Shown: positions 4,333 through 62,138 of the stretch, piece after piece
Layout: every line of letters starts with the position of its first letter
Numbering within the stretch: the stretch's first letter is position 1
Source: Podarcis bocagei
Lineage: Eukaryota
Reading direction: 5' to 3' (one strand)
Length of the DNA stretch: 64,000 nt
Assembly: GCA_964188305.1 (NCBI GenBank)
Contig: OZ076888.1
Made by a program: the position numbers and the translations under genes
The notes under the pieces: generated by a model
Databases searched by the model: none
What the model was told of the DNA's origin: nothing
Seen by the model: only the letters and a program-made list of their open reading frames with translations

Positions 4333-5730
4333 CCGTATTTTTCGCCCTATAAGACGCACCGGCCCATAGGACGCACCTAGTTTTCAGGGGGGGAAATCAA
4401 GGAAAAAAATATGATTTCCCCCCCGCAGCTCTGGGAGCAGCGGACGGGCTGCACGCAGCCTGTGCGCTACTCCAAGACCTTCTCCCTGCTTTTGCGGGAG
4501 GTGGCGGAATTCCCCCACCTCCCGCAAAAGCCCACAGGAGCCCCACTTGACTCCTGCGGGCTTTTCGACCAGGAGGGAGAAGGGACTGATTCGGCCAGTC
4601 AGTCCCTTCTCCCTCCTTGGGGAAAAGCCCCCAAGAGCGGCGCGCTCTTTAAAGGGTGCACGGCTCCTGCAGGCTTTTCTAGGAGGTTGGGGAATTCCCC
4701 CCCTCGTAGAAAAGCCAGCAGAAGCCGCGGAGCCCCTTTAAAGAGCGCACGGCTTTTGCCTGCTTTTGCGGGAGGTGGGGGAATTTCCCCATCTCCCGCA
4801 AAAGCCAAAAGGAGGGTTGGAGAGCAGCGGCAAGGCGTCGTGCGCCTTTCTGCTGCCCCCCATCCTCTGGGGCTGGCGATGGGGGAAGCGCTGCTTTCCC
4901 CACCGCCAGCCTCAAACCCGGGTTGGAGAGCAGCGGCAAGGCGTCGCACGCCTTCCTGCTGCCCCCCATCCTCTGGGGCTGGCGATGGGGGAAGCGCTGC
5001 TTTCCCCACCGCCAGCCTCAAACCCGGGTTGGAGAGCAGCGGCAAGGCGTCGCGCGCCTTCCTGCTGCCCCCCATCCTCTGGGGCTGGCGATGGGGGAAG
5101 CGCTGCTTTCCCCACCGCCAGCCTCAAACCCGGGTTGGAGAGCAGCGGCAAGGCGTCGCGCGCCTTCCTGCTGCCCCCCATCCTCTGGGGCTGGCGATGG
5201 GGGAAGTGCTGCTTTCCCCACCGCCAGCCTCAAACCCGGGTTGGAGAGCAGCGGCAAGGCGTCGCGCGCCTTCCTGCTGCCCCCCATCCTCTGGGGCTGG
5301 CGATGGGGGAAGTGCTGCTTTCCCCACCGCCAGCCTCAAACCCGGGTTGGAGAGCAGCGGCAAGGCATCGCGCGCCTTCCTGCTGCCCCCCATCCTCTGG
5401 GGCTGGCGATGGGGGAAGCGCTGCTTTCCCCACCGCCAGCCTCAAACCCGGGTTGGAGAGTAGCAGCAAGGCGTCGCGCGCCTTCCTGCTGCCCCCCATC
5501 CTCTGGGGCTGGCGATGGGGGAAGCGCTGCTTTCCTCCACCGCCAGCCTCAAACAGCAGACTCTCCTGGCTTCAGCGGAAGCAACGCGAAGCCTCCGGAG
5601 CGCAGGCTTCGGAGGCTTCGTGTTGCTATCGCTGAAGCCAAGGAGTCTGCATTCGCCCCATAAGACGCACCCACATTTCCCCTTCATTTTTGGAGGGGGA
5701 AAAGTGCGTCTTATAGGGCGAAAAATACGG
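4333..5730 (+). mobile_element. Non-autonomous Tc1/mariner (Tc2/pogo-like) element, copy 1, with hairpin/minisatellite interior
   Basis: Perfect 27-bp TIR ccgtatttttcgccctataagacgcac; TA duplicated at 4331-4332 and 5731-5732; empty site seen in the second L1 copy (aaaaaggtatttaaatata, about 27062-27080); no transposase. Strand is arbitrary. Confidence 0.93.
4814..5554. repeat. 106-bp GC-rich minisatellite, 7 copies, each with an internal hairpin
   Basis: Unit starts gggttggagag at 4814, 4920, 5026, 5132, 5238, 5344, 5450; internal inverted repeat ggctggcgatgggggaag...ctttccccaccgccagcc. Confidence 0.95.
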
Positions 5731-6289
5731 TACCTTTTTCAATTCATTATATATCATCTCCCAGAAAGCCTTAATCCTTGGGCATGTCCACCAAAGGTGA
5801 AAGAATGTACCTTCAGTTTCTTTACATTTCCAACATTTATTATCGGGCAGATGATAGATTTTTGCAAGCTTGACTGGTGTCATGTACCACTTGTATATCA
5901 TTTTCATAATATTCTCTCTTAGGGCATTACATGCCGTAAATTTCATACCTGTTGTCCACAACTGTTCCCAGTCAGCAAACATAATGTTATGTCCAACATC
6001 TTGTGCCCATTTAATCATAGCAGATTTGACCGTTTCATCCTGAGTATTCCATTTCAACAGCAAGTTATACATCTTTGACAAAATCTTAGTTTTAGGTTCT
6101 AACAGTTCTGTTTCTAGTTTTGATTTTTCCACCTGGAAGCCAATTTTCTTATCCAAGTTATATGCCTCCATTATCTGATAGTAATGTAGCCAGTCTCGCA
6201 CTTTATCTTTTAATTTCTCAAAACTCTGCAGTTTCACTTTGTCTCCTTGTTCCAAAATTTCCCAATATTTTGGCCATTTAGCCTCCATA
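5731..6289 (-). pseudogene. L1 ORF2 remnant containing the CCHC zinc knuckle
   Basis: Part of ORF 5626-6321: MEAKWPKYWEILE...CWKCKETEGTFFHLWWTCPRIKAFWEMIYNELKKV; no stops in this segment. Confidence 0.88.
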
Positions 6290-6644
6290 CAGTGGTACCC
6301 CGCAAGACGAATGCCTCGCAAGACGGAAAACCCGCAAGACGAAAGGGTTTTCTGTTTTGGAGGCGCTTCGCAAGACGAATTTCCCTATGGGCTTGCATCG
6401 CAAGACGAAAGCCCATAGGGAAATGCTGGCGGTCAGGAGCAAAGACTTTCGCCCACAGCCGGCCTTCAGAAGAGGACCTCTTCTGAAGTCCGGCGGGGGG
6501 CAAAAGTCTTTGCTCCCCCCCCCGCCTGCCTCCCCCCCGCCTGCCCCGGGCGATCTTAAAATGCTGGCGGGCGGGAGCGAAGCGTTCGCTGCCGACCCCC
6601 AGCATTTTAAAATCTCCAAGGGACAGCAGAGAAGTCTCTGTCCC

Positions 6645-7010
6645 GGGGAGATTTTAAAATGCTGGGGGTCGGGAGCGAAGCGCTGCAGACCCCCAACATT
6701 TTAAAATCTCCCCGTGTCCTGGGAAGATTTTAAAATGCTGGGGGTCGGGAGCGAAGCGCTGCAGACCCCCAGCATTTTAAAATCTCCCCGTCTCCTGGGA
6801 AGATTTTAAAATGCTGGGGGTCGGGAGCGAAGCGCTGCAGACCCCCAGCATTTTAAAATCTCCCCGTGTCCTGGGAAGATTTTAAAATGCTGGGGGTCGG
6901 GAGCGAAGCGCTGCCGACCCCCAGCATTTTAAAACCTCCCCGGGACACGGGGAGATTTTAAAATGCTGGGGGTCGGCAGCGCTTCGCTCCCAACCCCCAG
7001 CATTTTAAAA
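6645..7010. repeat. About 66-bp palindromic tandem repeat, about 5.5 units, last unit inverted
   Basis: Unit ggg[g/a]agattttaaaatgctgggggtc-gggagcgaagcgctgca-gacccccagcattttaaaatctcccc-gtgtcct with about 26-bp arms. Confidence 0.9.
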
Positions 7011-7011
7011 C

Positions 7012-7646
7012 GCTGTTCCGAAGTGGGGCGGGGGGGCGGGGACACCTGGCCCCGCCGCCCCACTTCAGAAAGCTCTTCCGAAGTGGGGAGGGGGGCGGGA
7101 ACACCTGGCCCCGCCGCCCCACTTCGGAAAGCTCTTCCGAAGTGGGGAGGGGGGGGCGGGAACACCTGGCCCCGCCGCCCCACTTCGGAAAGCTCTTCCG
7201 AAGTGGGGAGGGGGGGGCGGGAACACCTGGCCCCGCCGCCCCACTTCGGAAAGCTCTTCCGAAGTGGGGAGGGGGGGCGGGAACACCTGGCCCCGCCGCC
7301 CCACTTCGGAAAGCTCTTCCGAAGTGGGGAGGGGGGGCGGGAACACCTGGCCCCGCCGCCCCACTTCGGAAAGCTCTTCCGAAGTGGGGAGGGGGGGCGG
7401 GAACACCTGGCCCCGCCGCCCCACTTCGGAAAGCTCTTCCGAAGTGGGGAGGGGGGGCGGGAACACCTGGCCCCGCCGCCCCACTTCGGAAAGCTCTTCC
7501 GAAGTGGGGAGGGGGGGCGGGAACACCTGGCCCCGCTGCCCCACTTCGGAAAGCTGTTCCGAAGTGGGGCGGGGGGGCGGGGACACCTGCCCCATCCGCC
7601 CCACTTCGGAAAGCTGTTCCGAAGTGGGGCGGGGGGCGGGAACACC
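7012..7646. repeat. 60-bp palindromic G-rich minisatellite, about 10.5 copies
   Basis: Unit gctcttccgaagtggggagggggggcgggaacacctggccccgccgccccacttcggaaa; lines 7261-7500 are identical; arms ttccgaagtgggg / ccccacttcggaa. Confidence 0.95.
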
Positions 7647-8308
7647 TTCTGAAGGCGGGCAGGGGGCGAAAGTCTTTGTCCCCCCTGCCTGCCTTCCCAG
7701 GGGCTTTTAAATCGCCCCGGACAGCGGAGAAGTCCTCCGCTGTCCGGAGCGATTTTAAAATGCCGCCCGCCAGCATTTTAAGATAGCCCCGCACAGCGGA
7801 GAAGTCCTCCGCTGTCCCAGTGTTTTTTAAAATGCTGGGGGTGGGAAGAAAAGCCCTTGTCCCCCCCCCCAGCCTTCAGAAGAGGTCCAGGGACAGACTG
7901 TCCCCGGACCTGGTCTGAAGTCGGTTTCCCTAGGAACGCATTAATTGATTTTCAATGCATTCCTATGGGAAACCGTGCATCGCAAGACGAAAAAACCGCA
8001 AGACGAAGAGAATTGCGGAACGAATTAATTTCGTCTTGCGAGGCACCACTGTATTAAGTTTTTTCTGAGCCCATTTGCCACGAGTCTTTCAAAGCATAAC
8101 CCTACAGTATTTAGACAAAGATATATGCCATTTATGGGTAGGAAAGTATTGTTTCATTAACTGAGGCTGCAATCCTAGTTTCACTTGCCTGAGAGTTGAA
8201 TTCAGTGGAATTTACTTAGGAGTAGGCATGGTTAGGATTGTGCTATTCATCTCTCTTTAATGATGTGTGTGTGCAAGGAACAATGCATTTACATTGTAAT
8301 AGATGAGT

Positions 8309-8418
8309 ATCATAGAGTTGGAGAGGACCTTTTGCAGGAATCTTTTTGCCCGATGTTGGGCTTGAACCCATGGCCCTTAGTTTAAGAGACTCATGCTCTA
8401 CCGACTGAGCTATCCCGC
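8309..8418 (-). mobile_element. tRNA-Lys-derived SINE with CR1-like 3' tail (internally deleted)
   Basis: Reverse complement gggatagctcagtcggtagagcatgagtctcttaa...gggttcaagcccaacatcgggc resembles tRNA-Lys(CTT) and is followed by ccaactctatgat. Confidence 0.8.
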
Positions 8419-9459
8419 AGGATTCCCTTAATCTGTTTTTAAGGGTTGATAACTTTCTCATATGAGAGAGATGTTGATTCAAGAACTTTCTAGTATTTAC
8501 TGGTGATAATCAATTATAGTTAGTGGATTTCCTTTATTAACTTGGTTATTCATTAAAGGAAGTTAATTTTTTTAAAAAAATCATTTAAGGATGACATATT
8601 TTTTAAAAAATGATCCCGATCCCTCCCGTAAAGTGATATTCAGGAAAAATCTGTAGTCCACATTGGAGTTTACTATAGTGAGATGTTTTATATAATTTGA
8701 TCAGAAAGTTATAAAGTATAAGATTAGCAATTTGTCCAGAAAGGTAATTTTATAATCAATTGATACTTATTGCACATAAGGGGCGGGATTATACATAGGT
8801 TTTGGTCTTACTCAAGAATTGACCTATTATATTGCACCATAATTTAATGAGAAGTATGGTGAAAGGTGTGATCAAAGCACAAACATTTTCTGATTGTTGC
8901 CAATTAACACATGAGCTCAAGTAGAACTCTGTATCTGAGAACAGAATCTGGCAGGTGGAATACTTAATAGATTAGGAGGTGGTTGTCACTCCAGAAGAAA
9001 GCTAGGTATACGAAAGGGGTACGTTAGACTGAATCTAAATATATATATATATATATTAAAAGATTGTCAGCCCACTCTTGTACTTGACAGTAAACAATCC
9101 ATATGTTCAATTGGGCTTACTCCTTTGGGGGTGGGCATAGGGGCTGCAGCGTTCCATAACCAGCACCCAATGACAGGAGCTAAAGATGTTCACAAGATAA
9201 TTGTTCTTGAAGTGAAAATAAATAAAGCATTTGGGCTCAGTGTTCAGGTCCCAAGCAACATGCTTTCACACCTAGGATGTCAGGTGCCAAACGTGAGTCC
9301 TGTTAATTTCTCTCACTTGGTCACCACCTACACCCCCACACCCCTTGTCATCTGAATATTTCAAGCAACATCAAATTTTGTTTAATATTCCAAACATGGT
9401 TGGGTTTTTTTGGTTGGCTACAAGTCTCCTGGAATTGTAGCAAGCTTGTTTTCTAATGC

Positions 9460-9670
9460 TTCGGAGGCTAAGACCCAAGCCAACGACTTCAAGTTACAAG
9501 AAGGGAGATTCCAACTAAACATCAGGAAGAACTTTCTGATCGTAAAAGGCAAGGATCAGTGGATATGAGGTGGGGGACTCTCTTCCATTGGAAGTTGAAT
9601 GGCCCTCTTTTGAGATCCCTGCATTATAGGCGTTGGACGCTCAGAATCCCATCCAACTCTATGATTCTAT
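9460..9670 (+). mobile_element. Degraded CR1 LINE 3' end
   Basis: caagttacaagaagggagattccaactaaacatcaggaagaactttctga ... ccaactctatgattctat, homologous to 27505-27877. Confidence 0.78.
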
Positions 9671-10382
9671 AAGCATGCTTAAACGTTGTAGCTGTATGCA
9701 TTCCCTCCCTCCCTTTCTCCCCCTCTCTCGATATTGAGCTTGCCTGCCCGCCCTGTGCTGGGCTTGTGACTGACTCAGCTTTGCAACAATTGTTCACCTT
9801 TCCACTTGTCCCCAATTATCCTCTCATTTGATTTGACCTAGTTCAGTTCCATCTTTTTTCTTCCTTTTGGTCTTCCATTTGACACTTCTTGGAACCAAAT
9901 GAGGTAGCGGTGGTGGTGGGATCAGGGAGAGAGCTTTTTTCTCATGATTTCACCATTCCCGAGGAATAACTGAACACGGCCATGTTTGGTGAACATTATT
10001 GTCTCCAAACAATACAGAAAACTAAAGGTGCTGATGTCATAAAAAATGTTTGCCTCTCCCACCTACTGCTGACTTCAATGCAGTATTGTACTAAACTTCA
10101 GGGTGCAGGTGATTGGGATGGGTGGGCAAATAAACACTTGGTCGAGCCAAGGATTTTTTGTTTTGTTATCAAAGCGGGAGACAGAGATCCTGCGACTTTG
10201 TTCTGTACCATTGTGTCGAATGGCAGCCACCAGTGTCGGCAAGATAAGCCAAGATGTTGCAACTGCTGTGGAAAGACTAGATCAAGAAAGATGACCTGCG
10301 AATGGAATTTGGTGCCACCTTGTAAATAAGCAAACCTATGGGGCATTTGTATTCTCACCTGATCACTCTAAGGATCTAGGTC

Positions 10383-10518
10383 CAGGGTTTCGCAAACTTG
10401 GGTCTCTAGCTGCTGTTGGACTACAACTCCCATCATCCCTAGCTAGCAGGACCAGTGGCTAGGGATGATGGGAATTGTAGTCCAAAAACATCTGGAGACC
10501 CAAGTTTGGGATACCCTG
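10383..10518. mobile_element. Palindromic hAT-like MITE (ggactacaactcccatcatccc family)
   Basis: Near whole-length inverted repeat cagggtttcgcaaacttgggtctc...gagacccaagtttgggataccctg; relatives at 22681, 37560, 44820, 53480, 59093. Confidence 0.75.
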
Positions 10519-10890
10519 GTTCAGTCCATTCATCTGGGTGTGAGGTGGAACCTGTGCATGTGCTCTTAAATTCAGTTTCAGGTGTGGGATTTTGAAACTA
10601 TATGTGAGCCAGCTCTAAAGCTGAGTTACCTGCTCATCTAGGAAGCTCACCAGGTGGCCTTGGGCAAGTCGCCATTGCTCACTGTGCCTAATCCACTTCA
10701 CAGGTATGGCTGCCATGTTGCAGCTTGGAGAACCAGTTCCGCCACTCACCATGCTACCTGCTCTAGGGCATTTTTGAGTGTCTCACTTGCTGGGAAGTCA
10801 AAGGAAAAAGGTGGGGAGAAGAACCAGGGAGTAAGCACTAGGTAGGAGGCACTCTCACTGCACTGTCTCCCACTGCAGTTGCAAACTGTA

Positions 10891-10953
10891 AAGAAGAAGA
10901 AGAAGAAGAGGAGGAGGAGGAGGAGGAGGAGGAGGAGGAGGAGGAAGAAGAAG
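10891..10953. repeat. Polypurine microsatellite (GAA)n(GGA)n(GAA)n
   Basis: Read directly from sequence. Confidence 0.95.
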
Positions 10954-12009
10954 GCTGTTTCTCCAGGTCACAAGCTGGTAACACAGTTAACAGGCCCAGT
11001 GTGTGAATGCAAAGGGATAATCCCATGCATACAACTTTGCACTCTTTGGAGGCATGTAGGGTTCAAACGTAATCAAAATCCACATGGCCATTGCACTTTA
11101 AACCTGACTAGACTCCAGCATACACTGACAAAACAGGGGAGACAATATTGGCTTAGGCAGCAGATGTGGCGGCTTGTTTTCGTACAAACAGCCTTGAAGA
11201 GGTGTGTAGAGAGAATACCAGCCTGTCCGCCAACACATACTCTGGGTTGCAAGATTGCTCAAGTGTTGGCTATGGCAATCTGCTCGCTGTAAAATATTGG
11301 TTACTTGGTGACGTTAATGGCAGTGACAAACCAGAATGTGTGCTTCAGGCAAACAACTGGACAGTGCGTACCTTGCCCTGTGAAAGTAGCAGGTTGTGTC
11401 CCTCAAGCTGTTTGGGGGGGGGGGGATTGTAACACAAGCAAGCCTTTGTGCAAACTTCCCAAAGAGGGACAACCTGTAGGGTTAGGAGGTGGACCACGCT
11501 TTGCTAAAGCTCCCAATTAGCATGCTAATTAACTCCTATTTGGATGGTGGGTTCACTAATGTGGGCATATGATCTACTATTGGGAGCTGGTCTGAAGGTA
11601 GTTGCTGATTTCATCCTGTTCACCACTTGGCATTTTTGGGTTACTCTCCTCATTCACTCTTGAATAAATCATGCATCCTGTCACATTTATATCCCACCTT
11701 TCTTCCATGCCATCACGCCTGAGGTTGTTTAATTTTTTCCTCCCAGTAACACTGTGGCTTGCCCAAGGCAACTTCTCAGTTAAGCAGACACTGTAATTTG
11801 CTCTACTCGCTATACCACACTGTCTCTAATATACATGTAGTGCACACTAAAAATATAACCTTTCTGAGTGATCAGTTTATTCTAACCTAACTATTAATAC
11901 CATGAGACTTAGGGATATTCTTAAATGAGAGAATTTAGACGAGTTTGAAATTCTGAAGAAGATGAGTTTGAAATTCTGTAGCGACTTCAGAACAGTCTGG
12001 AACTGTAGC

Positions 12010-12102
12010 TATTAAGGCTAGATAAATCTGTCATGTCCAGCTTCTCATTTTTTCTCTTCATCCATTTCTCATCTTTTCACTTCAGCTTTCTGTTTGTTTG
12101 TT

Positions 12103-12158
<56 letters not shown>

Positions 12159-15185: not shown

Positions 15186-15186
<1 letters not shown>

Positions 15187-19780: not shown

Positions 19781-19783
<3 letters not shown>

Positions 19784-19857: not shown

Positions 19858-19861
<4 letters not shown>

Positions 19862-20111: not shown

Positions 20112-20445
20112 CAGTGGTGCCTCGCAAGACGAAAAGAATCCGTTCTGTGATTCTCTTCATCTAGCGGTTTTTTCGTCTTGCGAAGGAAGCCCATTGACGG
20201 ATTAGCGCTATTAGCGCTTTTAGCGGCTTTTAGCAGCTTATCTGCTGATCGGATCAGCTGATAAGCGGGTTAGCGGCTTAGAAAAGGGGGGGAGGAAAAA
20301 AAACCAGCAGGAACTCGCAAGACATTGTCATCTTGCGAAGCAAGCCCATAGGAAATTCGTTTTGCGAAGCACCTCCAAAACAGAAAACTCTTTCGTCTAG
20401 CGAGTTTTCCATCTTGCGAGGCATTCGTCTTGCGGGGCACCACTG
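20112..20445 (+). mobile_element. Tigger/pogo-like MITE, short form (334 bp) of the 6290-8051 family
   Basis: TA|cagtggtgcctcgcaagacgaa ... ttcgtcttgcggggcaccactg|TA; core of short ttagcg(g/c) repeats; splits an older repeat. Confidence 0.92.
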
Positions 20446-20499: not shown

Positions 20500-20731
20500 C
20501 AGTGGTATCTTGGGTTACATACGCTTCAGGTTACATACACTTCAGATTACAGACTCCGCTAACCCAGAAATAGTGCTTCAGGTTAAGAATTTCGCTTCAG
20601 GATGAGAAGAGAAATCATGCGGCGGCAGCACGGCGGCCCCATTAGCTAAAGTGGTGCTTCAGGTTAAGAACAGTTTCAGGTTAAGAACGGACCTCCAGAA
20701 CAAATTAAGTACTTAACCCAAGGTACCACTG
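20500..20731 (+). mobile_element. Tigger-like MITE, second family (caggttaagaa subterminal repeats)
   Basis: TA|cagtggtatcttgggtta ... taacccaaggtaccactg|TA; copies at 53991 and 63762. Confidence 0.9.
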
Positions 20732-22680: not shown

Positions 22681-22818
22681 CAGGCATAGGCAAACTCAGC
22701 CCTCCATATGTTTTTGAGACTACAATTCCCATCATCCCTGACCACCGGTCCTGTTAGCCAGGGATGATGGGAGTTGTAGTCCCAAAAACATCTGGAGGGC
22801 CTAGTTTGCCTATGCCTG
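22681..22818. mobile_element. Palindromic hAT-like MITE
   Basis: TIR caggcataggcaaact / agtttgcctatgcctg; degenerate 8-bp TSD tgctatag / ggctagag. Confidence 0.85.
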
Positions 22819-26000: not shown

Positions 26001-27044
26001 GAGAAAATTAAGCATATTTGGCCTATTTGTTTAACACAAAAAGCGCAAGTAAGAACACCTGTTGGTGTTATTTTAGAGGTAACTGAAACAGTGCATCAGA
26101 GGGACTTGGCACACACACCTGACTCTCTCTCCATGGGAGACCAGAGTGATAGCTGTTGCGGTTCGTTGGGCATTGGTACAAAATAATGTTTCTGCAGAAA
26201 CAAAGCAGCCTTTTATTTCATTAACTGAAGTGCCTGCAGCTCCCATTTTCAAGGCTGCTGGAAAGATAATAAATGCCGAGCAAAGAAAGTTAATCTGTAA
26301 ATCGCATTTCAATAAATAAGTCAGAAACAAAATCACTGCAGGCCCATTGTGTCCTGCTGACTTCTTGTCTGTTTGTTTGGCTCCCTGCCCCCCAACCATT
26401 ATTTTAGCTCACGTTAGTGCAGAGAATTGGGACAAATGGCAATTAGCAAAACGGGTTTAATTGGGGGTGTTAAATGCTCTTAAGACATAGCTAAGAAGCT
26501 ACAGTGGCATCTGATGAAAAGCTAGGTCAGCATTTCCCAAACCAAGGGCACCCCCGCCCCCCGATTAAAACTTGGGGTGCGGATCTTATTCCTGCACTCA
26601 GGAAAATAAAATCCTGTTTTCTTGATCATCTTCTAGAGAACAATGGCGATCGTTTGTGCCACCAAAGGGTAACCCAGCTAATACTGTATCCAGCATTTTG
26701 ACCTCTCCTTTCGCGGTAGCTGAGTGTGTCTTCTGTGTGTCTTGGCGTACCCTGGGCCACGCCAAGGGCTCTTGGCTCATCCTTCTTCCATTGGGGATGC
26801 CATTGCAGGGTGCCAAGTAGCATGGTAGAATCAGTTCTGCACAGGGCCTTTCCACTCCAGTGGACTTAAACTCCAAATGAGTGGCATACAATTTTAATGG
26901 TGCATTTCAGCCTCACTAGTTACAAATACGCTCCTGGGGCCCCCAGCCCACAGTTTGGGAATATGCATGCTTGTAGTTTCTTGAGAGAGTAGACTGGACA
27001 GAATGGATAGATTCAAAGCTTCTCTCTCAGAATACCTAAACTGA

Positions 27045-28099
27045 TGATTTATAATTAAATGAAAAAGGTATTTAAATATACCTTCCTGAAGAAACCAGAG
27101 GCCTTTCTCCTGGGCATGGTTGGCCAATTGGTGTTAAAGAAGGATAGAACTTTCTTTATGTATGCTACAACAGCAGCAAGAATACTTATTGCAAAGTATT
27201 GGAAGACACAAGATTTACCCACTCTGGAAGAATGGCAGATGAAGGTGATGGACTATATGGAACTGGCGGAAATGACTGGCAGAATCCGAGACCAGGGAGA
27301 AGAGTCAGTGGAAGAAGATTGGAAGAAATTTAAAGACTATCTACAGAAATACTGTAAAATTAATGAATGTTAGAATGATGTTGGATTGAAGTTAAGTGGT
27401 TTTTAGCAGCAATGTTATAAAGGAATATGTAAAAATGGATTGTTAACAGGTGATAATCTAAAGTTATAATATATTAAGTTAAAAGATTAAGATAAAATCA
27501 AAGAGGAGAAGAGGAGGTTAAGGGGTGATATGATAGCCATGTTCAAATATATAAAAGGATGTCACATAGAGGAGGGAGAAAGGTTGTTTTCTGCTGCTCC
27601 AGAGAAGCGGACACGGAGCAATGGATCCAAACTACAAGAAAGAAGATTCCACCTAAACATTAGGAAGAACTTCCTGACAGTAAGAGCTGTTCGACAGTGG
27701 AATTTGCTGCCAAGGAGTGTGGTGGAGTCTCCTTCTTTGGAGGTCTTTAAGCAGAGGCTTGACAACCATATGTCAGGAGTGCTGTGATGGTGTTTCCTGC
27801 TTGGCAGGGGGTTGGACTCGATGGCCCTTGTGGTCTCTTCCAACTCTATGATTCTATGATTCTATTCTATGATTCTAGGGAAAGGATTTGCTGAATTAAC
27901 TAATTGAACTGGAATACAAAAAAGGGAGGTGTGAGGTGGTCAGGGAAACAAGCAGATGAAGGACAAGATATGGAAAGACTGATCTGTTTTTAACTGTTTT
28001 TACCTTGTATTTTCATTTTCTTTTTTTTCTTCTCTCTTTTTTTCTTATTTTTGTAATATGTTGAAACTTTAATAAATATCTTTTTTTAAAAAAACAAAA
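27045..28099 (+). mobile_element. 5'-truncated L1-clade LINE (same family as 3714-8071), containing a CR1 insertion
   Basis: ORF2 tail 27059-27373; 3' UTR homologous to 3714-4027; aataaa plus A-rich tail; perfect 17-bp TSD cagaatacctaaactga at 27028-27044 and 28100-28116. Confidence 0.93.
27505..27877 (+). mobile_element. Young 5'-truncated CR1 LINE 3' end
   Basis: Intact ORF2 tail GDMIAMFKYIKGCH...RKNFLTVRAVRQWNLLPRSVVESPSLEVFKQRLD; (attctatg)n tail. Confidence 0.93.
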
Positions 28100-40310: not shown

Positions 40311-41514
40311 CATAATCATCTGTAACGTGTCTAGGCTTCATGGAATGGGGGGGGGATGTCTAGGTGGCAACCGATTTGACTTGCAGATAATGAACAGTGC
40401 TAGGTGAGCAGCCACAAGGCCATTCAGAGCCAGATCCTAGGCCAATTTAGGCTGTAGAAAATGTTGAAAGAATGATGTGAAGGAAGCCAGGGTGACTCCT
40501 TGGATGTAATGGTATTCCTGAGGTGACAAGACAGAGGTGCTGCAGCAGGAAGCTCAGGTACCCACAATTAAGTCCTCTGCCTCACTTAAGAAAATAATGG
40601 CCATCATGTGCATCACATTAAAATAACTAACTGAATAAGTTGAAGCTTCTCTTGTTTTATTAACCCGAAAGAGGAGGGGGAGAGGAGACAGATTTTATGC
40701 ACGGCAATGGAAAGGTAAAATGACTTAATTAAGGATGATGTGCTCTGAGATGGGGTTTCTGCTGCGTGGTTCCCTCCTCCCATGTGTATGCATGCACACT
40801 TTTCCCCAGGAAGGCCAGCACTGATTGCTTCGCACAGCTGTTCTGGCGCTTCCTCTCTCTGCTGTTACCTGCAAAAAGAAGCAGGTTTTAAAAAGCAAAA
40901 GACAACAACTCAGGAGTGGTCCACAGAAGGGGACATTGGAGTACAAGCAGAAGGCAACTGTTGAGTTGGGATGCTGCAATTGGCAAACGGCTGTAAAAAG
41001 GGGCCAGTTTCTTAAATGCACAGAGTTCAGGACTTTAGTTTGTTCTCTTTCTGCAACAGCAACAGGTGTGCAGTGACAAGAAATAGAGAGGTGTTGCTTC
41101 TTTAATATTTCCGCACCCGTGCAGAAATGGGCCTCTGGAAGTCTTAGGTTTTTCCTTGGTGATCAAAAATGATCATAAGGACTAGGTCTGTAGGCTTCTG
41201 TATAAAGTTGGGATTTTGTAGTTGCAGCAGCTTCCCATGCAATCTTGCAACCACAGGGAAAGAACACTTTACTGTATTTAAAATATTTCTCTTCTGCCCT
41301 TCATGTTTCCAAGGCAGCTGACAAAACTAAGATAAAACTCAAGAATCAAAGTAAGTCATAATTTGGTTACAGCATGTTAAAACAAAACATTAAGAAGCCT
41401 GGGATAATGAATCGTGGGTTGTTCTGCTAAAACTGTTCACATAGTTGAAAACTATTTCTTGTGCATACCCTCCCAAATCAAGACAAGATTTTCAAACTGC
41501 TAATATGCTACAGT

Positions 41515-41734
41515 GAGAGCCACTGTGGCAAAAGGGTTAGAGTGTTGATCTAGGACCTGGGAGAGCAGGGTTTGAATCGCCACTCAGCCATGAAATTCAT
41601 TGGGTGACCTTGGGTGAGTCACCATCTCTTAGCCTAACCTACCTCACAGGGTTGGCATGAAGATGAAATGGGGAGGAGGAGAACCACGTACACCCCATTG
41701 AGATCTTTGGAAGAAAAAGGTGGCATATAAGTGT
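41515..41734 (+). mobile_element. CORE/MIR-like SINE abutting the assembly gap
   Basis: A/B-box-like head (ggttagagtgttg...gggtttgaatcgccactcagcc), core gggtgaccttggg...tagcctaacctacctcacagggttg. Confidence 0.75.
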
Positions 41735-41873
41735 NNNNNNNNNNNNNNNNNNNNNNNNNNNNNNNNNNNNNNNNNNNNNNNNNNNNNNNNNNNNNNNNNN
41801 NNNNNNNNNNNNNNNNNNNNNNNNNNNNNNNNNNNNNNNNNNNNNNNNNNNNNNNNNNNNNNNNNNNNNNNNN
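41735..41873. other. Assembly gap (139 N)
   Basis: Run of n. Confidence 1.
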
Positions 41874-50598: not shown

Positions 50599-50909
50599 CA
50601 GTGGTGCCTCGCAAGACGAAAATAATCTGTTCCGTGAGTCTCTTCGTCTAGCGGTTTTTTCGTCTTGCGAAGCAACCCTATTAGCGGATTAGCGCTATTA
50701 GCGGTTTAGCGGCTATTAAAGGCTTAGTGGCTTAGCAGCTTAGAAAAAGGGGGAGGAGTGAAAAAAATCGCAAGACTCGCAAGACTTTTTCGTTTTGCGA
50801 AGCAAGCCCATAGGAAAATTCGTCTTGCGAAGTGCATCGAAAAACAGAAAACCCTTTCGTCTAGCGGGTTTTTCGTCTTGTGAGGCATTCGTCTTGCGGG
50901 GCACCACTG
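50599..50909 (+). mobile_element. Tigger/pogo-like MITE, short form (311 bp) of the 6290-8051 family
   Basis: TA|cagtggtgcctcgcaagacgaa...ttcgtcttgcggggcaccactg|TA; colinear with 20112-20445. Confidence 0.92.
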
Positions 50910-52266: not shown

Positions 52267-52743
52267 CAGTGTTTCCCAACCTTTTTTGGGCAAAGGCACA
52301 CTTGTTGGATGAAAAAAATCTCGAGGCACACCACCATTACAGCCCCGTGACGTCAGCGCGCAGCGTCACGCCGGGAGGGACGCACGAAAGTGTAAGATTC
52401 AATTTTTCCCCCTCCCCCTTGCTGGGGAACCTCCAAGCTTTGGGGGGGGGGGAGGAGGCAGCAAAGCGAGGCAGGAAGGAGAGCGCGGCTTGGCTGGGTG
52501 AGGTTTGGCAGGGAATGAGAGCCGCGAGGCGGGCGCTGCGGACGGAGGCGCTGCCCGCCGAGCTCGCAGGCAGCCAGGCAGGCAGATGGCGAGAGCCCCA
52601 CGCTGGGCGGCCTCTCCTCGCCGCCGCCGCCCCGCCTCTCGCCGCCCGACTCACCCGCCTCCCTCCAGGCAACATCTCGCGGCACACCAGGCAACATCTT
52701 GCGGCACACTAGTGTGCCGCGGAACAGTGGTTGGGAAACACTG
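52267..52743. mobile_element. hAT (Charlie-like) MITE with CpG-rich interior
   Basis: TIR cagtgtttcccaacc / ggttgggaaacactg; perfect 8-bp TSD ccctagtg at 52259-52266 and 52744-52751; subterminal ggcacac repeats. Confidence 0.92.
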
Positions 52744-53990: not shown

Positions 53991-54232
53991 CTGTGGTACC
54001 TCGGGTTACATACGCTTCAGGTTGCATACGCTTCAGGTTACAGACTCCGCTAACCCAAAAATATTACCTCGGGTTAAGAACATTGCTTCAGGATGAGAAC
54101 AGAAATCGTGCTCCGGCGGCACAGCAGCAGCAGGAAGCCCCGTTAGCTAAAGTGGTGCTTCAGGTTAAGAACAGTTTCAGGTTAAGAACGGACCGCCGGA
54201 ACAAATTAAGTACTTAACCCGAGGTATCACTG
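53991..54232 (+). mobile_element. Tigger-like MITE (20500 family)
   Basis: TA|ctgtggtacctcgggtta...taacccgaggtatcactg|TA. Confidence 0.9.
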
Positions 54233-55300: not shown

Positions 55301-57792
55301 CCAGAATGTCCTTACATGAAGAGGTACACAATGCTTGTTCATGGGAGATCGTAGGACGCGTGTTATGAAAACGTAAAGGGAGAAGAGGTCTGTTGAAGAC
55401 AATTGGAGGACCAGCTGAAGAAGAAAAGCTGGAGATGGAATAGAACAGAAGCAGGTCAGCAGAGGAGAGGAGAAGTGCACACTGGGAAACGGAACCATAA
55501 ACAGAAATGCTTTTTTGTGAGTGTGACAGGGACTTACTCGATGCAGCTTGTGACACACAGCTGATTCCGGTGCCGTGTAAACCACAGGAGGTCGGGGCTG
55601 GCTTTTTGGTTTGTTCATTAATATAATTGCTTGCTTGTGTTATCAGCAGTGAAGTGATTTCGTTCGTGCTCATTAGATTCCAGAGTGGTTGCCAGTCTGT
55701 CTCTTCTCATCTGCAGCTGAGAACTATTTATTTGAGGACGATGTGCGCTTCTCTTCCATGACCGTTTAATGGCCAGGCATTCAACCTCAGGCAGCTGAAG
55801 AGACTGCAAGTGACTCTGGGTTCTGCCACCTTCCAAAAGAGCTAGGAGGTCAGGGCACTCCTTGAACAGCTGGTTGCTCCTCCTGAGGCCTCTGAAGAGC
55901 AGCAGTGTGAGCCCAAGTTAATTAACATGGGAGGAGCATGTATATTTTGTATTGTTTTTTGTAAGTCCCTTTAAAAGCTTATTTAGCAGAAAGGTGTCTA
56001 ATACTGTACCTGGGGGGGGGGGGAGGAATAAACCAAACAATGGGATCACACATGCACACTGAGGACCATTCTCATTCCTACTTCTTATTTGTCTGTGTGT
56101 ACAGTCATCCCGAATTTCCTTTCTATAGGGCATTATGTGCCTGGAAAATTGTGGCTATGATATTTCAAAGGGGACAAAGAGTGCTATGCATGTGTGTTTT
56201 GATATATAGGTATATTCTTGCTGCAAACAGTTTTAGATGATGCAGACAGAACTGGCACTGAGTTGGCCTTTGATAGAAGCTTTGTGTGCCTGTAATAAAT
56301 ATATACGTATATATACAACCTATGACTTGGGCCATTTTGTCATGGTGCTGGCCCTGCTTTCAGCTCCAGCAGTAATAGTTTCATCGCCACACACACAAAA
56401 TAAACCTCAGCTCCAGCCAATCAGCATTTATGCTTCCAATAAAACCCAGCATTCTGGATCAAGAGCCATCAATACGATGTCATACAGCCACAGTCAGATT
56501 ATAGCATTAGCAGAGGAAATGGGGCCTTGTGTATTCCTTGAGAGGCTGCTAAAATAGGATGAGGTTTCTGTGGTGCCATTTGCGTTCCGTCTCAAAACAG
56601 ATCGGCAGAGTTATAGGCTTCAAAGGGTGCCATGCTGAAGAAAGCAAATATCGGCCATTGTGGGCTTTAGCAGGGGGAGGCCGTAAATGTTAGATGGCTG
56701 CTTTAAATAGAGGGTATCCTGCCTTGGGGCAGGAGTTGAACTGTCTGGCTCATAGGCCTGGTTCAGATGCTATAATGTTTTCCATACTGAGTCTTCCAAA
56801 CACCCATCAGTGTGGTCATTCTGAGTCAGACATTGCTTCCTCCCTGCGACCACTTCCACTGGGATGCTCAGCAGGGATAACTTTGCAGGTTCCGAACTGG
56901 GCCACAAACATCCATCCCATGTGTCTGGCACAAAGTTGGGCTTTGGAAAAACCTCCACTTTTATTTTTACTTCCAAAAATATATTTCTAGTTCTTAGGGC
57001 AACAGGTAGTTTAAAAAAGAGAAAAAGATCAGAACATTGTTTGAGCAGATTGATTCTTTTGGTACTTTGTATATCCCTGCATCCATCTTGGTTGATTTGT
57101 CCCCATTTATCCACCGCTTTTTTTAAAGTGCCCAGGCTTGGAAAACTGATTTAGACCGAGGTTTGGCATGGAATAGAACATCAGAAAATTGCCCTCGGTT
57201 AGATCCTGTTGCATTGCGCGGACATGTCAGCTTGCTGGAAATTGCAGCCATTGTGAATGAAACCAAATCAAAATGTTGCTTCTCCTGAGTTCTGCAGTGC
57301 CAGGGTCAATTTTCATTTTCCTTTGGAGAGAGTTTACTAACTTGTGTTAAAAAAAATCATCTATGTTATCTAGTTCCTAACCTGACTTCTTCACTATATG
57401 AATGATTGTGAGATGAAGTCCTAGTTTGACAGGCTCCTCGCTGTCACGGACTAACACCCAATTTCATGACTTGCCAGTCACCCATTATTTCATTGCTACA
57501 GAGACTTCTGTCTCTATGGAGGCAGATTTAGCTTGGCAAATCACCTTTTATTAGCTTTTAATGGCTAATGTCCACTAGAAAATGACAACCATTGCTGGCT
57601 TTTCATTATTGTCGTACTCGCAGGCACAGGGTGTAATCTGAGCAGGCAGACTGGTCCAAATTAGGTTTCCTGTTAGAGAAGGGGCACACACAGGCCTGAA
57701 TTCACGTGGGAGCTAAAACTGAATCCAGAGACATGAGCCTGAGAAAGTTAAATCACAGCATTCTGTATTTTAGGAGAATGAGTGTACATGCG

Positions 57793-58036
57793 TACAACAG
57801 AAGTCGAACGCCTTGCGAGTCAAACGTTTTGGCTCCCAAACACTACAAACCCAGAAGTTAATGTTCTGGTTTGCGAATGTTCTTTGGAACCTGAACGTCC
57901 GACACGGGTTCCATGGGTTTTGATTGACTGCAGGACCTTCCTGCAGCCAATCAGAAGCCGTACCTTGGCTTCCGAACATTTTGAAAGTCGAACAAACTTC
58001 CAGAACAGATTCCATTCGACTTCCGAGGTACAACTG
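57793..58036. mobile_element. Tigger-like MITE remnant (third family; left TIR lost)
   Basis: Right end ttcgacttccgaggtacaactg|TA; repeated cgaac motifs. Confidence 0.65.
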
Positions 58037-59270
58037 TATTACCGTTTTCAGTTCTCAACTAAATGATGTGCGTAGATGCAGTTACCAAAAATGTTTGAAA
58101 ATGCATACACTTCACCATCCCTGCCCATGTTGGCTGGAACTGCTGGACATTGTAGGCTGAAGGATTTGGAAAATATCAAGGTGGGGGAAGGTTGTCTGGA
58201 CCGTGTCCCAGGTATTTTAGCTCTTCAATGATAAATACCTGAACCTATTCTACAAGCCCCATTTCTGCTCTTCCTGATACTTTACTGCAAAAGTGATCAC
58301 TTTCCAGTTTGTTTATAGTTCTGAAAATAAAATCATAACAAGTCGTTGATCAACTTATCATGATCACTTTGATCTGAAGGTGGTAAAAAACAAATCAGAT
58401 ATGTATGCAATTTTGTTGCATTTGAAATTTACTTATTTATTAAATTTTTATACTGCCCTTCATCTGAGGATCACGGGGTTGCGTACAATATCAAAACACA
58501 TAAATGCATACCATAGTAACAAACAAAACAACAACCCCCACTATTGAATCAATAATGCTTGAGTGGCTATTAAAAATTCTGCAAAACCTTTGCCCCAAGT
58601 GTGAAATGTAAGTCACTTCAGGCGGGTGGGAGCTCACATGCTTCCCCATGCTCCTCTACATTGGGGGTGCTTGAGAAAATACTTTTCTGTGAATTCCAAG
58701 GCAAACTGGCATGATCTCCACCTCCTAATCTGCAGACTGAAGCACAATTATCCTTTGGGTTTCGCATTTGTCTGCAATACAGTTCTCCGTTCAAAAACAT
58801 ATGCAGGCATGTGTTTAACATCCTAACCCACATATTTTAGGATAAATTAAGTTTGAAACTAATAAATTGAGATAGACAAGTATTTAAATATTATTTTCTG
58901 TTTGGATTTTTTAAAATGCAGTTTAATGCAGGAACAGAACTTACGATGCAAAATTTACATGGACTAGAAATTGCCAGAACCAGCCATCCCTGCTCCATAC
59001 AAAAAATAAAATAAAATCAGCCCTCACTTTCAGAAAACTAGCATGTCAAGGAGAAGGCTAGGTTGGAAAAACACTTTCTCATATCTAGTTTGCAGGGATG
59101 GGGAAACTGTGGACCTCCCGATGTTGTTGGACTCCAGCTCTCATCATCCTTTAGCCAAAATGGCCAGTGGTCTGGAATGACGGCATGTTGTTGTCCAGTA
59201 GCACAGATTCCCTGTGCCACCCTATCAGAACAGATGGTCAAGTAATGCATAGATGTACCCACAGACTGCA

Positions 59271-59504
59271 TTAAGAAAGGTAAAGGGACCCCTGACCATT
59301 AGGTCCAATCGTGGCCGACTCTGGGGTTGCGGCGCTCATCTCGCTTTATTGGCCGAGGGAGCCTCGTACAGCTTCGGGTCATGTGGCCAGCATGACTATG
59401 CCGCTTCTTGTGAACCAGAGCAGCGCACGGAAACGCCGTTTACCTTCCCGCCAGAGTGGTACCTATTTATCTACTTGCACTTTGATGTGCTTTCGAACTG
59501 CTAG
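59271..59504 (-). mobile_element. 5'-truncated Sauria SINE
   Basis: Colinear with 28588-28815; 16-bp TSD gtacccacagactgca at 59255-59270 and 59505-59520. Confidence 0.92.
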
Positions 59505-60219
59505 GTACCCACAGACTGCAATACAAGGATGCTATTCTCTCTCTTGGACTAGGATCTACCATCCTCCCCTTTTTGTTGTTTTCTTCTTGTTGCTTTTGCC
59601 AAGTTATCTGGCCCAGTGCATTATGGGACATCTGGCATCTCTACGTTTTGTTCTTCCCATTCTCCACCCCTTCCTCCTCCACCCCACACTTCCACCTCTG
59701 AATTATTATTATTATTATTAAGTGCTGATGGGAAGGACATCATGCGTACTGGGGGAGAGGATGCAAGCACCAGATAAGGCTTGTATGTAAGAATGTGTCT
59801 GTCATCAGGCTTGTCTTTCCTCCTCTTCATTCTGGGACACTTACCCGTTTTAATTTTGACTCGTGTAAGTGAAGCTGGGTAGGCAGGCAGATAACGGGAA
59901 GCATCAAGAGTGGCAGGCACTGAGTCAGCAGCGCCTTGGATAAATGCAGACAGATGGCTTAGCAATGCTCCGAGATTCAAATGGGAAGCCTGGCCTTCTC
60001 ATTTAAAAATAATAACTACAAAACATGGGGGGTGTTCATTTAATCAAAGTGTTCTCTAATTAGTTCATACCTGCTTCCCCCTTATCTGTATCCAAGATGA
60101 AAAAATGTTCGGCCTTGCTCTTGGCTAATGTCGCATCATAGATGCAACCCCACCCATCATGGACAGCTGCTAACTTGCCATGTCAAATTAAGATGCCCGT
60201 GCACCCTCTGCTAGTATAG

Positions 60220-60549
60220 TGAAATATACGAGAGTGGATTTCATGCTCTTTATTCAGCTCACAGTGGTGAGGAGGAATGGAATTTCCCCCCAGAATGTCT
60301 GCTTTATATACATTATTTACACAATGGGCCCCACGTGATCCCTAATTCTGGGATTCTCCTGTAGGCCAATCAGGTTGCGGATTCACTTCCACCTGGAGCT
60401 GGATTGGGTGGCTCCTGTGGACCAATCAGGCTGCTGCATTCTGGATCCAATTTTTCTAGGACCAATCAGACTGCTGCATTCTGAAGCCTATTGTTCTAGG
60501 ACCAATCAGACTGCTGTATTTTGGATCCTATTCAATTCAGTACATAACA
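60220..60549 (-). mobile_element. Solo LTR (330 bp), probably from a Gypsy-like retroelement
   Basis: TG...CA termini; 5-bp TSD tatag at 60215-60219 and 60550-60554; on the minus strand three 40-bp CCAAT repeats, then TATATAAA (60303-60310), then AATAAA (60249-60254). Confidence 0.85.
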
Positions 60550-60641
60550 TATAGCATGCAGATTTCATGGAGCAGCAGTAAACTCATGCAGAACACAATT
60601 AAAATGTTGGTGTGTTTAGTGGGAAGGGCATGTGCCATATA

Positions 60642-62138
60642 CCGTATTTTTCGCCCCATAAGACGCACTTTTTCCCCTCCAAAAATGAAGGGGAAATGTG
60701 CCTGCGTCTTATGGGGCGAATGCAGGCTTTCGCTGAAGCCTGGAGAGCGAGGGGGGTCGGTGCGTACCGACCCCTCTCGCTCTCCAGGCTTCAGGAAGCT
60801 CTGCGCAACCCTCGGGAGACCGCCCCGCTCCCGGTGGCCCTGCAGAGCTGCCTGCGCTCCTGGGACCAGCGCAGCTCTGCCCGGCCACCGGGAGCCGGGG
60901 GAGAAGCTCCGCCCCGCTCCCGGTGGCCCTGCAGAGCTGCCTGCGCTCCTGGGACCAGCGCAGCTCTGCCCGGCCACCGGGAGCCGGGGGAGAAGCTCCG
61001 CCCCGCTCCCGGTGGCCCTGCAGAGCTGCCTGCGCTCCTGGGACCAGCGCAGCTCTGCGCCGCCATCCCGAGCGGGGCGCTAAGTCCCGCCCCGCTCGGG
61101 ATGGCGGCACAGAGCTGCCTGCCGTCGCGGGACTGCAGGCAGGTCTACGCCGCCATCCCGAGCGGTGCGCTAAGTCCCGCCCCGCTCGGGATGGCGGCAC
61201 AGATCTGCCTGCCGTCGCGGGACCGCAGGCAGGTCTACGCCGCCATCCCGAGCGGTGCGCTAAGTCCCGCCCCGCTCGGGATGGCGGCAGAGATCTGCCT
61301 GCCGTCGCGGGACCGCAGGCAGGTCTACGCCGCCATCCCGAGCGGTGCGCTAAGTCCCGCCCCGCTCGGGATGGCGGCACAGATCTGCCTGCCGTCGCGG
61401 GACCGCAGGCAGGTCTACGCCGCCATCCCGAGCGGTGCGCTAAGTCCCGCCCCGCTCGGGATGGCGGCACAGATCTGCCTGCCGTCGCGGGACCGCAGGC
61501 AGGTCTACGCCGCCATCCCGAGCGGTGCGCTAAGTCCCGCCCCGCTCGGGATGGCGGCAGAGATCTGCCTGCCGTCGCGGGACCGCAGGCAGGTCTACGC
61601 CGCCATCCCGAGCGGTGCGCTAAGTCCCGCCCCGCTGGGATGGCGGCAGAGATCTGCCTGCCGTCGCGGGACCGCAGGCAGGTCTACGCCGCCATCCCGA
61701 GCGGTGCGCTAAGTCCCGCCCCGCTGGGATGGCGGCAGAGATCTGCCTGCCGTCGCGGGACTGCAGGCAGGTCTACGCCGCCATCCCGAGCGGTGCGCTA
61801 AGTCCCGCCCCACTCGGGATGGCGGCAGAGATCTGCCTGCCGTCGCGGGACCGCAGGCAGGTCTACGCCGCCATCACGAGCGGGGCGCTAAGTCCCGCCC
61901 CGCTCGGGATGGCGGCACAGAGCTGCCTGCCATCGCGGGACTGGTGCACTTCTCCCCATCGCCAGCCCCACAAGCTCGGGGGACAGCGGGGAGGCAGAGC
62001 GTGCCTTCCCACTGTTCCCCGACCTGGTTCTTCCAGCCCCGCACCTGGGGGGGAAATAAATTTTTTTTTCTTTATTTCCCCCCCAAAAAACTAGGTGCGT
62101 CTTATGGGCCGGAGCGTCTTATGGGGCGCAAAATACGG
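60642..62138 (-). mobile_element. Non-autonomous Tc2/pogo-like element, copy 2, inverted relative to 4333-5730 and with a different interior
   Basis: TA|ccgtatttttcgccccataagacgc ... gcgtcttatggggcgcaaaatacgg|TA; about 85 bp at each end match copy 1. Confidence 0.93.
60821..61943. repeat. 89-90-bp palindromic CpG-rich minisatellite, about 12.5 units of two sequence types in one register
   Basis: Unit starts (cgcccc[g/a]ct) at 60821, 60910, 60999 (type A) and 61088, 61178, 61268, 61358, 61448, 61538, 61628, 61717, 61806, 61896 (type B). Confidence 0.95.

Follow-up and report, generated by a model that had tools for sequence, protein, structure and literature searches.

Transposons with tandem repeats in their interiors have been described from several animals. 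miDNA4 of Xenopus tropicalis (Scalvenzi and Pollet; PMC12628747, PMC9659126) is, as summarized in those papers, a non-autonomous element of Tc1/mariner type with an internal tandem repeat, like the lizard elements analyzed here; its repeat is single in some copies and an array in others, and it likewise carries and seeds tandem DNA. Its authors propose capture of a repeat that already existed, with AT-rich microhomology expansion, whereas at least two of the lizard arrays come from the element's own modules. The lizard elements further differ in that their units consist of double hairpins rich in GC and in that the amplified module is not the same from one copy to another.

Xstir and Xmix, also from Xenopus (Hikosaka and Kawahara 2004, as summarized in PMC12628747), are MITEs whose interior gave rise to tandem repeats, as in the lizard. 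According to that summary, stem-loops during replication were proposed as the mechanism, and MITE, composite and array forms coexist. The Xstir unit given there consists of the MITE ends plus interior, whereas the lizard units are separate interior hairpin modules; family and host also differ, and no free tandem-array form occurs in the lizard window.

The pearl, DTC84 and DINE-1 type of bivalves and insects (PMC3879986) resembles the lizard elements in having flanking modules around a central array of variable number, ordered unit variants, copies that are each unique, and a junction palindrome proposed as a hotspot. A microsatellite lies next to their core repeats, their target duplication is AA and they may be related to Helitrons, in contrast to the TA duplication, true terminal inverted repeats (TIRs) and wholly palindromic units of the lizard elements; no microsatellite borders the lizard arrays. 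Foldback elements (FB, Galileo and Tetris, the last cited in PMC9659126) are likewise non-coding, consist mainly of self-complementary repeats and can seed satellites. Their arrays are the long terminal inverted repeats themselves, whereas the lizard elements have short TIRs of 27 and 22 bp, ends made of 87-128 bp of unique sequence, and central arrays in direct, head-to-tail orientation.

That template switching can give rise to mirrored changes in hairpins is well established (PMC8794818, PMC5453318, PMC8604942). Quasi-palindrome correction and related template-switch mutations produce one-step mirrored substitutions or indels that perfect or lengthen stems, as well as local inversions, much as in the lizard arrays, although the published cases come from RNA genes, coding DNA and genome-wide clusters and not from transposon interiors. 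For the lizard group, the only satellites that we found in the literature are SINE-derived (PMC10702118). Our literature searches returned no lacertid description of tandem-repeat-bearing MITEs, and neither TIR sequence was found in print.

A colinear backbone common to elements A and B

The stretch of lizard DNA analyzed here (the window) is 64 kb long. It contains two related elements, A (4333-5730, 1398 bp) and B (60642-62138, 1497 bp), the latter inverted relative to A. Their 27-bp TIR, CCGTATTTTTCGCCCYATAAGACGCAC, matches the window only at 4333, 5730 (minus strand), 60642 and 62138 (minus strand), with 0-2 mismatches and a chance expectation of 0. The parts of element A and its insertion site are as follows.

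4331-4332, no strand: TA target-site duplication to the left of element A, with its partner at 5731-5732
4333-4424, plus strand: left end, in which the 27-bp TIR is accompanied by a G7/C7 hairpin and the GCCCATAGGACGCAC motif recurs as a second direct copy
4425-4813, plus strand: extra hairpin modules, nested within a large imperfect palindrome (h1 4479-4545, h2 4546-4640, h3 4641-4752, h1' 4753-4814)
4814-5554, plus strand: array of 7.0 units of 106 bp, 98% (TRF)
5555-5643, plus strand: terminal hairpin, fold z -9.3
5644-5730, plus strand: right end, in which the TIR is joined by a small hairpin and by a further, inverted copy of its motif on the inner side
27043-27493, minus strand: paralogous (90%) to the repeat in which element A lies, with an uninterrupted target site

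Elements of Tc1/mariner type insert at TA and duplicate it. A TA stands beside all four ends of A and B, and in the empty paralog the flanks that match those of element A are separated by one TA, at 27069-27070. Since the empty site has only one TA, element A was inserted at TA with duplication of the dinucleotide. The original prediction of non-autonomous, TA-inserting elements is supported. About 1500 reads skip element A by joining 4330 to 5731. We rejected this joint as evidence of an empty allele because the flanks of A are themselves a high-copy repeat.

Element B is read from its right end to its left.

60642-60728, minus strand: homolog of A's right end, with TA at 60640-60641
60729-60819, minus strand: terminal hairpin, fold z -8.7, alignment z 5.3 against A's terminal hairpin
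60820-61048, minus strand: about 2.5 a-type double-hairpin units of 89 bp, the third an a/b hybrid (TRF reports 60820-61122, 89 bp x 3.4)
61049-61941, minus strand: 9.9 b-type units of 90 bp, 97% (TRF), fold z -7.3
61942-62046, minus strand: a single copy of module X, homologous to A's 106-bp unit
62047-62138, minus strand: homolog of A's left end, with TA at 62139-62140

Comparison of A with the reverse complement of B by blastn gave 92 bp at 88% identity for the left ends (4333-4424 against 62047-62138) and 87 bp at 94% for the right (94.3% for 5644-5730 against 60642-60728). The TIRs, TA duplications and common ends of about 85 bp in the original prediction are borne out by these values, as are its element lengths and its arrays of 7 units of 106 bp in A and 12.5 of 89-90 bp in B. 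Its statement that the two units do not align holds as well (z -0.6 and 0.7 for the 106-bp unit with the 89- and 90-bp units, Smith-Waterman against dinucleotide shuffles), with one correction: the 106-bp unit is homologous to a single-copy stretch of B at 61946-62027 (z 14.8, 80.5% identity). Each 106-bp unit consists of two hairpins with a CCCGGG junction (fold z -6.1), and A's array is the X module, amplified.

In both elements the backbone is colinear, running from the left end through the X double-hairpin module and the terminal hairpin to the right end. The terminal hairpins share an outer stem, GCTGAAGCC/GGCTTCAGC, while their inner sequences differ, each being palindromic. The notion of shells with swappable cargo is correct only as to shared ends and differing arrays: the interiors are not unrelated inserts, since A's unit is the X module, amplified in A and single in B, and the terminal hairpins are homologous too. 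The shell is thus larger than first thought, and of the five arrays no fewer than two were built from the element's own sequence. With two copies of this family and three of the second read, the evidence for a common backbone is a single comparison, that of A with B.

A's modules at 4425-4813 (fold z -6.8 to -9.3) have no counterpart in B, and a search for the source of B's 89/90-bp unit among A's modules and the backbone gave no score above shuffles. A foreign origin for this unit is possible. In B's X module the first hairpin is intact and the second is interrupted at its loop, which is where the 90-bp array starts.

A second, unrelated family shows the same organization

The window also contains three TA-flanked copies of a second family, with the 22-bp TIR CAGTGGTRCCYCGCAAGACGAA (chance matches expected, 0).

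6290-8051, plus strand: long copy, with TA at 6288-6289 and 8052-8053 and many subterminal CGCAAGACGAA motifs
6639-7010, plus strand: array of 4.9 hairpin units of 76 bp within the long copy, fold z -10.1
7012-7647, plus strand: array of 10.6 hairpin units of 60 bp within the long copy, 96%, fold z -8.4
20112-20445, minus strand: short copy of 334 bp, with the TIR pair and TA flanks
50599-50909, minus strand: short copy of 311 bp, with the TIR pair and TA flanks

The long and short copies have about 128 and 85 bp of their ends in common, and the short copies have no arrays, in line with the claim that this family behaves as the first does. The 76-bp array derives from the adjoining single-copy module at 6544-6617. 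Its last unit, 6948-7010, is inverted: identity is 95% for the minus strand and 87% for the plus. No hairpin modules common to both families, or present elsewhere in the 64-kb window, were found, nor any free-standing copy of a unit. A weak score (z 4.8) between A's 106-bp unit and 7648-7972 resembles GC-run similarity.

Strict MITEs are usually up to about 600 bp long, non-coding and high in copy number. The short copies of the second family are small, non-coding and high-copy; A, B and the long copy, at 1.4-1.8 kb, are above MITE size because of their arrays only. As in tandem-repeat-containing MITEs, a central head-to-tail array lies between MITE ends, and single-unit or array-free relatives exist; within the first family, X is present once in B and seven times in A. 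The kind of element to which A and B belong has been recognized before, in frogs, clams and flies, and is not new. The names "Tc2-like" for the first family and "Tigger-like" for the second are putative labels suggested by the shape of the TIRs.

Excess of hairpins in the elements, and mirrored changes between units

Every repeat unit folds far better than its shuffles (fold z -5.5 to -10; none of 200 shuffles was equally good), in agreement with their description as hairpins. Across the window, mean fold z is -5.75 inside the three elements and -0.23 outside, and stretches outside with a GC content of at least 0.60 average -0.5. The hairpin excess is specific to the elements.

The a- and b-type units of B, whose difference amounts to one lineage split rather than many independent events, differ at five stem pairs changed on both sides, a pattern matched by none of 500 shuffles; in addition, four nucleotides in one arm mirror a CTGC duplication in the other. 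The switch between the two types lies between hairpins, not within one. The X hairpins of A and B differ by two compensatory changes, both from G-C to A-T (matched by 20 of 500 shuffles), and mirrored CpG decay could be the source of both. Template switching together with slippage, the mechanism suggested in the original prediction, is consistent with the mirrored a/b changes and with the inversion of one 76-bp unit.

The ratio of observed to expected CpG is 0.63-0.94 in the arrays against 0.37 in the whole window. Each array has units with private changes, mostly at CpG, and the arrays are therefore not under homogenization now. Pfam searches of the long open reading frames inside the arrays gave no domain besides one sub-threshold chance hit, and no transposase domain was present among the scanned open reading frames of the window.

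The ends are far more abundant than the interiors

About 4000-8000 reads at each element end pass, just beyond the TA, into unrelated AT-rich flanks, as two independent runs of raw reads show; to the left of element A, about 4000 reads have loose ends that begin exactly outside the TA. In the raw reads, both families are represented by thousands of copies, dispersed and with TA at their flanks. Relative to the unique flank bin, depth at the element ends is higher by factors in the hundreds to thousands. For element A, depth counted at 85% likeness, at which copies lacking the interior and copies with a diverged interior look alike, is about 4200 in the left-end bin (4334-4467), 340-530 in the hairpin modules (bins 4468-4735) and 8-128 in the array. 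The second family has 8500-11700 at its ends against 57-190 in its interior, and about 6500 loose ends at 6410 are attributable to its short form. Both depth and identity uphold the view that the ends are commoner and better conserved than the interiors. Selection of the ends alone for transposition, with faster decay of the CpG-rich interior, would produce the same contrast as the proposed rewriting of the interior.

The low mid-array depth in the two raw-read runs had been read as showing A's array to be private to its locus. We withdrew this reading because those runs come from organisms other than that of the run closest to the window, in which contig word depth at mid-array is roughly 100-160 times the unique level. 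Searches for both TIR patterns gave 0 matches in metagenome and viral collections, and the first family's TIR had 0 matches in a prokaryotic-genome collection.

Origin of the arrays

We consider it probable that A and B represent one high-copy, non-coding, TA-inserting family, in which different modules of a short ancestor were amplified by slippage and template switching; the mechanism and the short ancestral form are what we infer from the comparison. The common ancestor would have been roughly 350-400 bp long and composed of left end, X module, terminal hairpin and right end. Movement of a copy would require ends recognized by a transposase from another element, and the ends would remain alike because only copies with such ends move. 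The interior, unconstrained, rich in GC and CpG and made of near-perfect hairpins, would be prone to two kinds of error during replication or gap repair. By slippage or unequal exchange, a module would become a tandem array. If the growing strand switched to the other arm or the other strand, one arm would be copied onto its partner, which would keep or extend the palindrome and occasionally invert a unit. In the lineage of A, which has 389 bp of further hairpin modules, X would have been amplified seven-fold; in that of B, X would have been kept once and another double hairpin amplified 12.5-fold in two variants. The unrelated second family, named CAGTGG, would have taken the same route.

A less likely but substantial alternative is that each array arose once in an old master copy and was spread by transposition, as ordinary subfamilies are, with no ongoing rewriting and no unusual rate of change in the interior; A and B would then be members of two subfamilies. 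The high mid-array contig depth in the closest run is what such spread would give, and the private, mostly CpG changes agree with arrays that are not homogenized now. Against this, identity is 97-98% among units but 88-94% between the ends of A and B, and the a/b hybrid and the inverted 76-bp unit record change within arrays. This alternative is compatible with slippage and template switching as the first origin of the arrays and differs in timing only.

True capture of cargo, in which the ends picked up pre-existing minisatellites and the inserts of A and B are unrelated, is unlikely. It is the model proposed for miDNA4 (PMC12628747), and nothing corresponding to B's 89/90-bp unit was detected in A or in the rest of the window. 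However, A's unit is an amplified backbone module that is single in B, the 76-bp unit derives from its neighbor, no unit stands free within the 64 kb, and B's array begins in the loop of an X hairpin with neither a duplicated target nor the ends of a second element there.

Selection on the stems, with the arrays serving as small-RNA or dsRNA precursors or as CpG-rich regulatory DNA, is very improbable: mirrored changes do preserve the stems and CpG is elevated, but Rfam contained no matching RNA family in the elements or near the arrays, private CpG mutations are left unrepaired, and unit sequence is unrelated among copies of one family. Mis-assembly of GC-rich repeats is the least credible source of the arrays or their lengths, since all bins of the arrays are covered both by two independent raw-read runs and by two contig sets, and neither collapse nor inflation would yield private variants in a definite order or a hybrid a/b unit, even though short-read contigs of other runs break inside the arrays and array lengths are those of the assembly.

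From few events, we infer that slippage aside, template switching may have acted as a builder of transposon interiors in this lizard. More tentatively, the TA-inserting MITEs of lacertids might produce palindromic, CpG-rich minisatellites throughout the genome, with interiors generated largely de novo by repeated fold-back copying and slippage. Hairpins would then be conserved without selection as their sequence changes, and many unit types would arise independently in each family and be scattered by transposition. The locus joins two repeat classes, mobile elements and tandem arrays, in this vertebrate group. Mirrored arm changes in DNA without evident function provide a natural test of structure-preserving mutation and bear on the reading of compensatory hairpin changes as evidence of selection. 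If transposition has scattered GC- and CpG-rich hairpin arrays through these genomes by the thousand, they would have consequences for the quality of assemblies, for methylation maps and for the stability of replication.

Elsewhere in the window, a gap of N at 41735-41873, which has no bearing on these results, follows a SINE-like repeat and lies outside all element parts.

Element ends, target site and shared backbone

The elements considered here belong to two unrelated TA-flanked families, the second of which had been called Tigger-like.

4333-5730: element A, family 1
60642-62138: element B, family 1, inverted relative to A
6290-8051: long copy, second family
20112-20445: short copy, second family (334 bp)
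50599-50909: short copy, second family (311 bp)

Both A and B are bounded by a 27-bp terminal inverted repeat (TIR), which within the window occurs only at their ends (0 matches expected by chance), and both have TA on either side. With B reoriented, the ends of the two elements align over 92 bp at 88.0% identity and over 87 bp at 94.3% identity. The host repeat around A is 90% identical to a paralog at 27043-27493, in which the uninterrupted target site carries one TA only (27069-27070), indicating that A entered at a TA, which was duplicated in the process. This host repeat (3801-4330 and 5733-6287) is itself high-copy, with a read depth of ~5000 dropping towards 6200. Its 90% identical paralog in the window spans 27043-27960 on the minus strand, and the second-family long copy lies at the far edge of the host repeat around A.

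TRF identified in A an array of 7.0 x 106 bp (98% identity), and in B an array of 3.4 x 89 bp followed by 9.9 x 90 bp (97%). A and B thus combine shared ends with different arrays, as the original prediction had it. Also in agreement with it, the 106-bp unit showed no alignment to the 89- and 90-bp units (z -0.6 and 0.7, dinucleotide shuffles).

The 106-bp unit does align to a single-copy stretch of B, 61946-62027 (z 14.8, 80.5% identity), which adjoins the end homologous to A's. We refer to this double-hairpin module, of which the 106-bp unit is the amplified form, as X. The hairpin beside the other end is likewise homologous in A and B (z 5.3). In the terminal hairpin the outer stem is retained and the inner sequences differ, each forming a near-perfect palindrome. 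These three homologies beyond the array units define a colinear backbone consisting of left end, X, terminal hairpin and right end. A consists of this backbone with 389 bp of extra hairpin modules (4425-4813) and a seven-fold amplification of X. In B, X is single, and its second hairpin is cut at the loop, where the 90-bp array starts; comparisons within the window found no source for the 89/90-bp unit. The prediction is therefore partly supported: the elements do carry and generate hairpin arrays, not by swapping unrelated cargo, but probably by amplification of separate portions of an interior that A and B have in common.

In the second family, the long copy has ~128 and 85 bp of ends in common with the 334- and 311-bp copies, and carries 1562 bp of hairpin modules plus two arrays in place of their ~120-bp middle. 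Its 76-bp unit is derived from the adjoining single-copy module at 6544-6617. No modules common to both families, or present elsewhere, were found in the 64-kb window, and the elements contain neither protein domains nor Rfam matches.

Hairpin excess and base composition

Folded as single-stranded DNA, the units and single-copy modules reached z scores of -5.5 to -10, with 0 of 200 shuffles folding as well; the only exception was the truncated X copy of B (z -2.4). We also scanned the whole window for folding in 100-nt stretches.

Fold scan of the window in 100-nt stretches
Stretches; n; mean z; number with z < -5
Inside the three elements (A, B, second-family long copy); 94; -5.75; 57
Outside; 1179; -0.23; 8
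Outside, GC >=0.60; 20; -0.5; not listed

The difference between inside and outside, together with the weak folding of GC-rich stretches outside, shows that palindromy is a property of the elements and not of base composition, confirming the prediction that the units are more palindromic than shuffles. The GC content of the elements is 0.62-0.70, versus 0.46 for the window, and their CpG observed/expected ratio is 0.67-0.91, versus 0.37, corresponding to weaker CpG depletion than in the surroundings.

Copy abundance

Two independent raw whole-genome runs (~1.9 Gb of each) were mapped onto 4200-8200 at a likeness of at least 85%. At each element end, ~4000-8000 reads match through the TA and then continue into unrelated AT-rich sequence; this divergence just past the TA places both families at thousands of different sites.

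Summed read depth per bin, run X24 (raw reads from another organism)
Region; depth
Left-end bin of A (4334-4467); ~4200
Hairpin modules of A (4468-4735); 340-530
Bins of the 106-bp array of A; 8-128
Ends of the second family; 8500-11700
Arrays of the second family; 57-190

At 6410, ~6500 loose ends continue into the short-form sequence of the second family. Mid-array depth approximated that of unique sequence in both raw-read runs, which come from other organisms, and reached ~100x that value in contigs of the best-holding run (X15, the run nearest to the window). We rejected an empty allele as the origin of ~1500 reads skipping A from 4330 to 5731, as these reads originate at further copies of the host repeat.

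Depth in the long copy of the second family was 1300-2600 across the right-hand part of its interior (7684-7951), far above the remainder of that interior, and a subfamily with this right module seems to be common. At array positions such as 4825, 4831, 5341, 5355 and 5361, nearly all raw reads of X24 and X23 (two other organisms) differ from the window letter, whereas the X15 contigs have the window's letter; lineage-specific variants of the 106-bp unit may exist.

Traces of mechanism and timing

Comparison of the a-type (89-bp) and b-type (90-bp) units within the B array reveals five stem pairs in which both partners have changed, including three G-C to C-G transversions. None of 500 shuffles reached five mirrored changes, and slid controls gave 0-2. 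The third B unit is an a/b hybrid with its switch point between the hairpins, each hairpin being of one type throughout. In the second hairpin of the b-type, four extra bases in the right arm are the mirror of a duplicated CTGC that the left arm already had. In the second family, the final 76-bp unit runs in inverted orientation, matching at 95% on the minus strand versus 87% on the plus strand. In the first X hairpin, two pairs are altered on both sides between A and B, both G-C to A-T; 20 of 500 shuffles match this, and mirrored CpG decay could explain it.

Intra-strand template switching yields mirrored hairpin changes of this kind (PMC8794818, PMC5453318, PMC8604942), and tandem growth in such arrays is conventionally ascribed to slippage or unequal exchange at forks stalled by hairpins (PMC12628747, PMC3879986). 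From the handful of events seen here, we infer that both processes acted: template switching would have produced the mirrored arm changes and the inverted unit, and slippage or unequal exchange at stalled forks the tandem arrays.

Similarity is 97-98% among the units of each array but 88-94% between the A and B ends, making the arrays younger than the A/B split. Private changes in the units, mostly at CpG, indicate that the arrays are no longer homogenised. They may have expanded in place or been transposed ready-made. The interiors, 74-80% alike, have diverged faster than the ends, as would be expected if the ends are selected for recognition by a transposase and CpG decay acts inside, a special rewriting process not being required.

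Relation to known systems

Miniature elements (MITEs) that carry tandem repeats at their centre are documented in Xenopus (Xstir and the Tc1/mariner MITE miDNA4), bivalves (pearl and DTC84) and Drosophila (DINE-1, SGM and PERI) (PMC3879986, PMC12628747, PMC9659126). By our tests, the elements described here are TA-inserting, TIR-bounded, non-coding and high-copy. They differ from the pearl/DINE-1 group in having no microsatellite and a duplication of TA rather than AA, and from foldback elements in their short TIRs and central direct arrays. Searches of the open-access literature yielded no account of elements like these in lacertids or any other squamates, an absence that is itself weak evidence; SINE-derived satellites are described in squamates.

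Other repeats in the window

Two short palindromic elements, at 10390-10510 and 22690-22800, have a common hairpin (ACTACAAYTCCCATCATCCCT ... AGGGATGATGGGARTTGTAGT) and the strongest folding outside the three studied elements (z ~-10); they are probably another MITE family. Repeats of GGTTACATACRCTTCA and a lone CAGTTGTACCTCGGAAGTCGAA, at 20513-20551, 54004-54042 and 58015-58036, resemble the ends of Tc1-like elements and may be what is left of a further Tc1/mariner family. A tRNA-like match on the minus strand at 8356-8412 (Rfam RF00005, 32.8 bits) probably marks the head of a SINE of tRNA origin, not a tRNA gene. A SINE-like repeat at 41505-41734 abuts an assembly gap (41735-41873) that lies outside all element features and has no bearing on the finding. 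A GC-rich stretch at 52560-52730 contains two copies of the 22-bp direct repeat CCAGGCAACATCTCGCGGCACA and, after them, a short hairpin with a fold z of -5.4.
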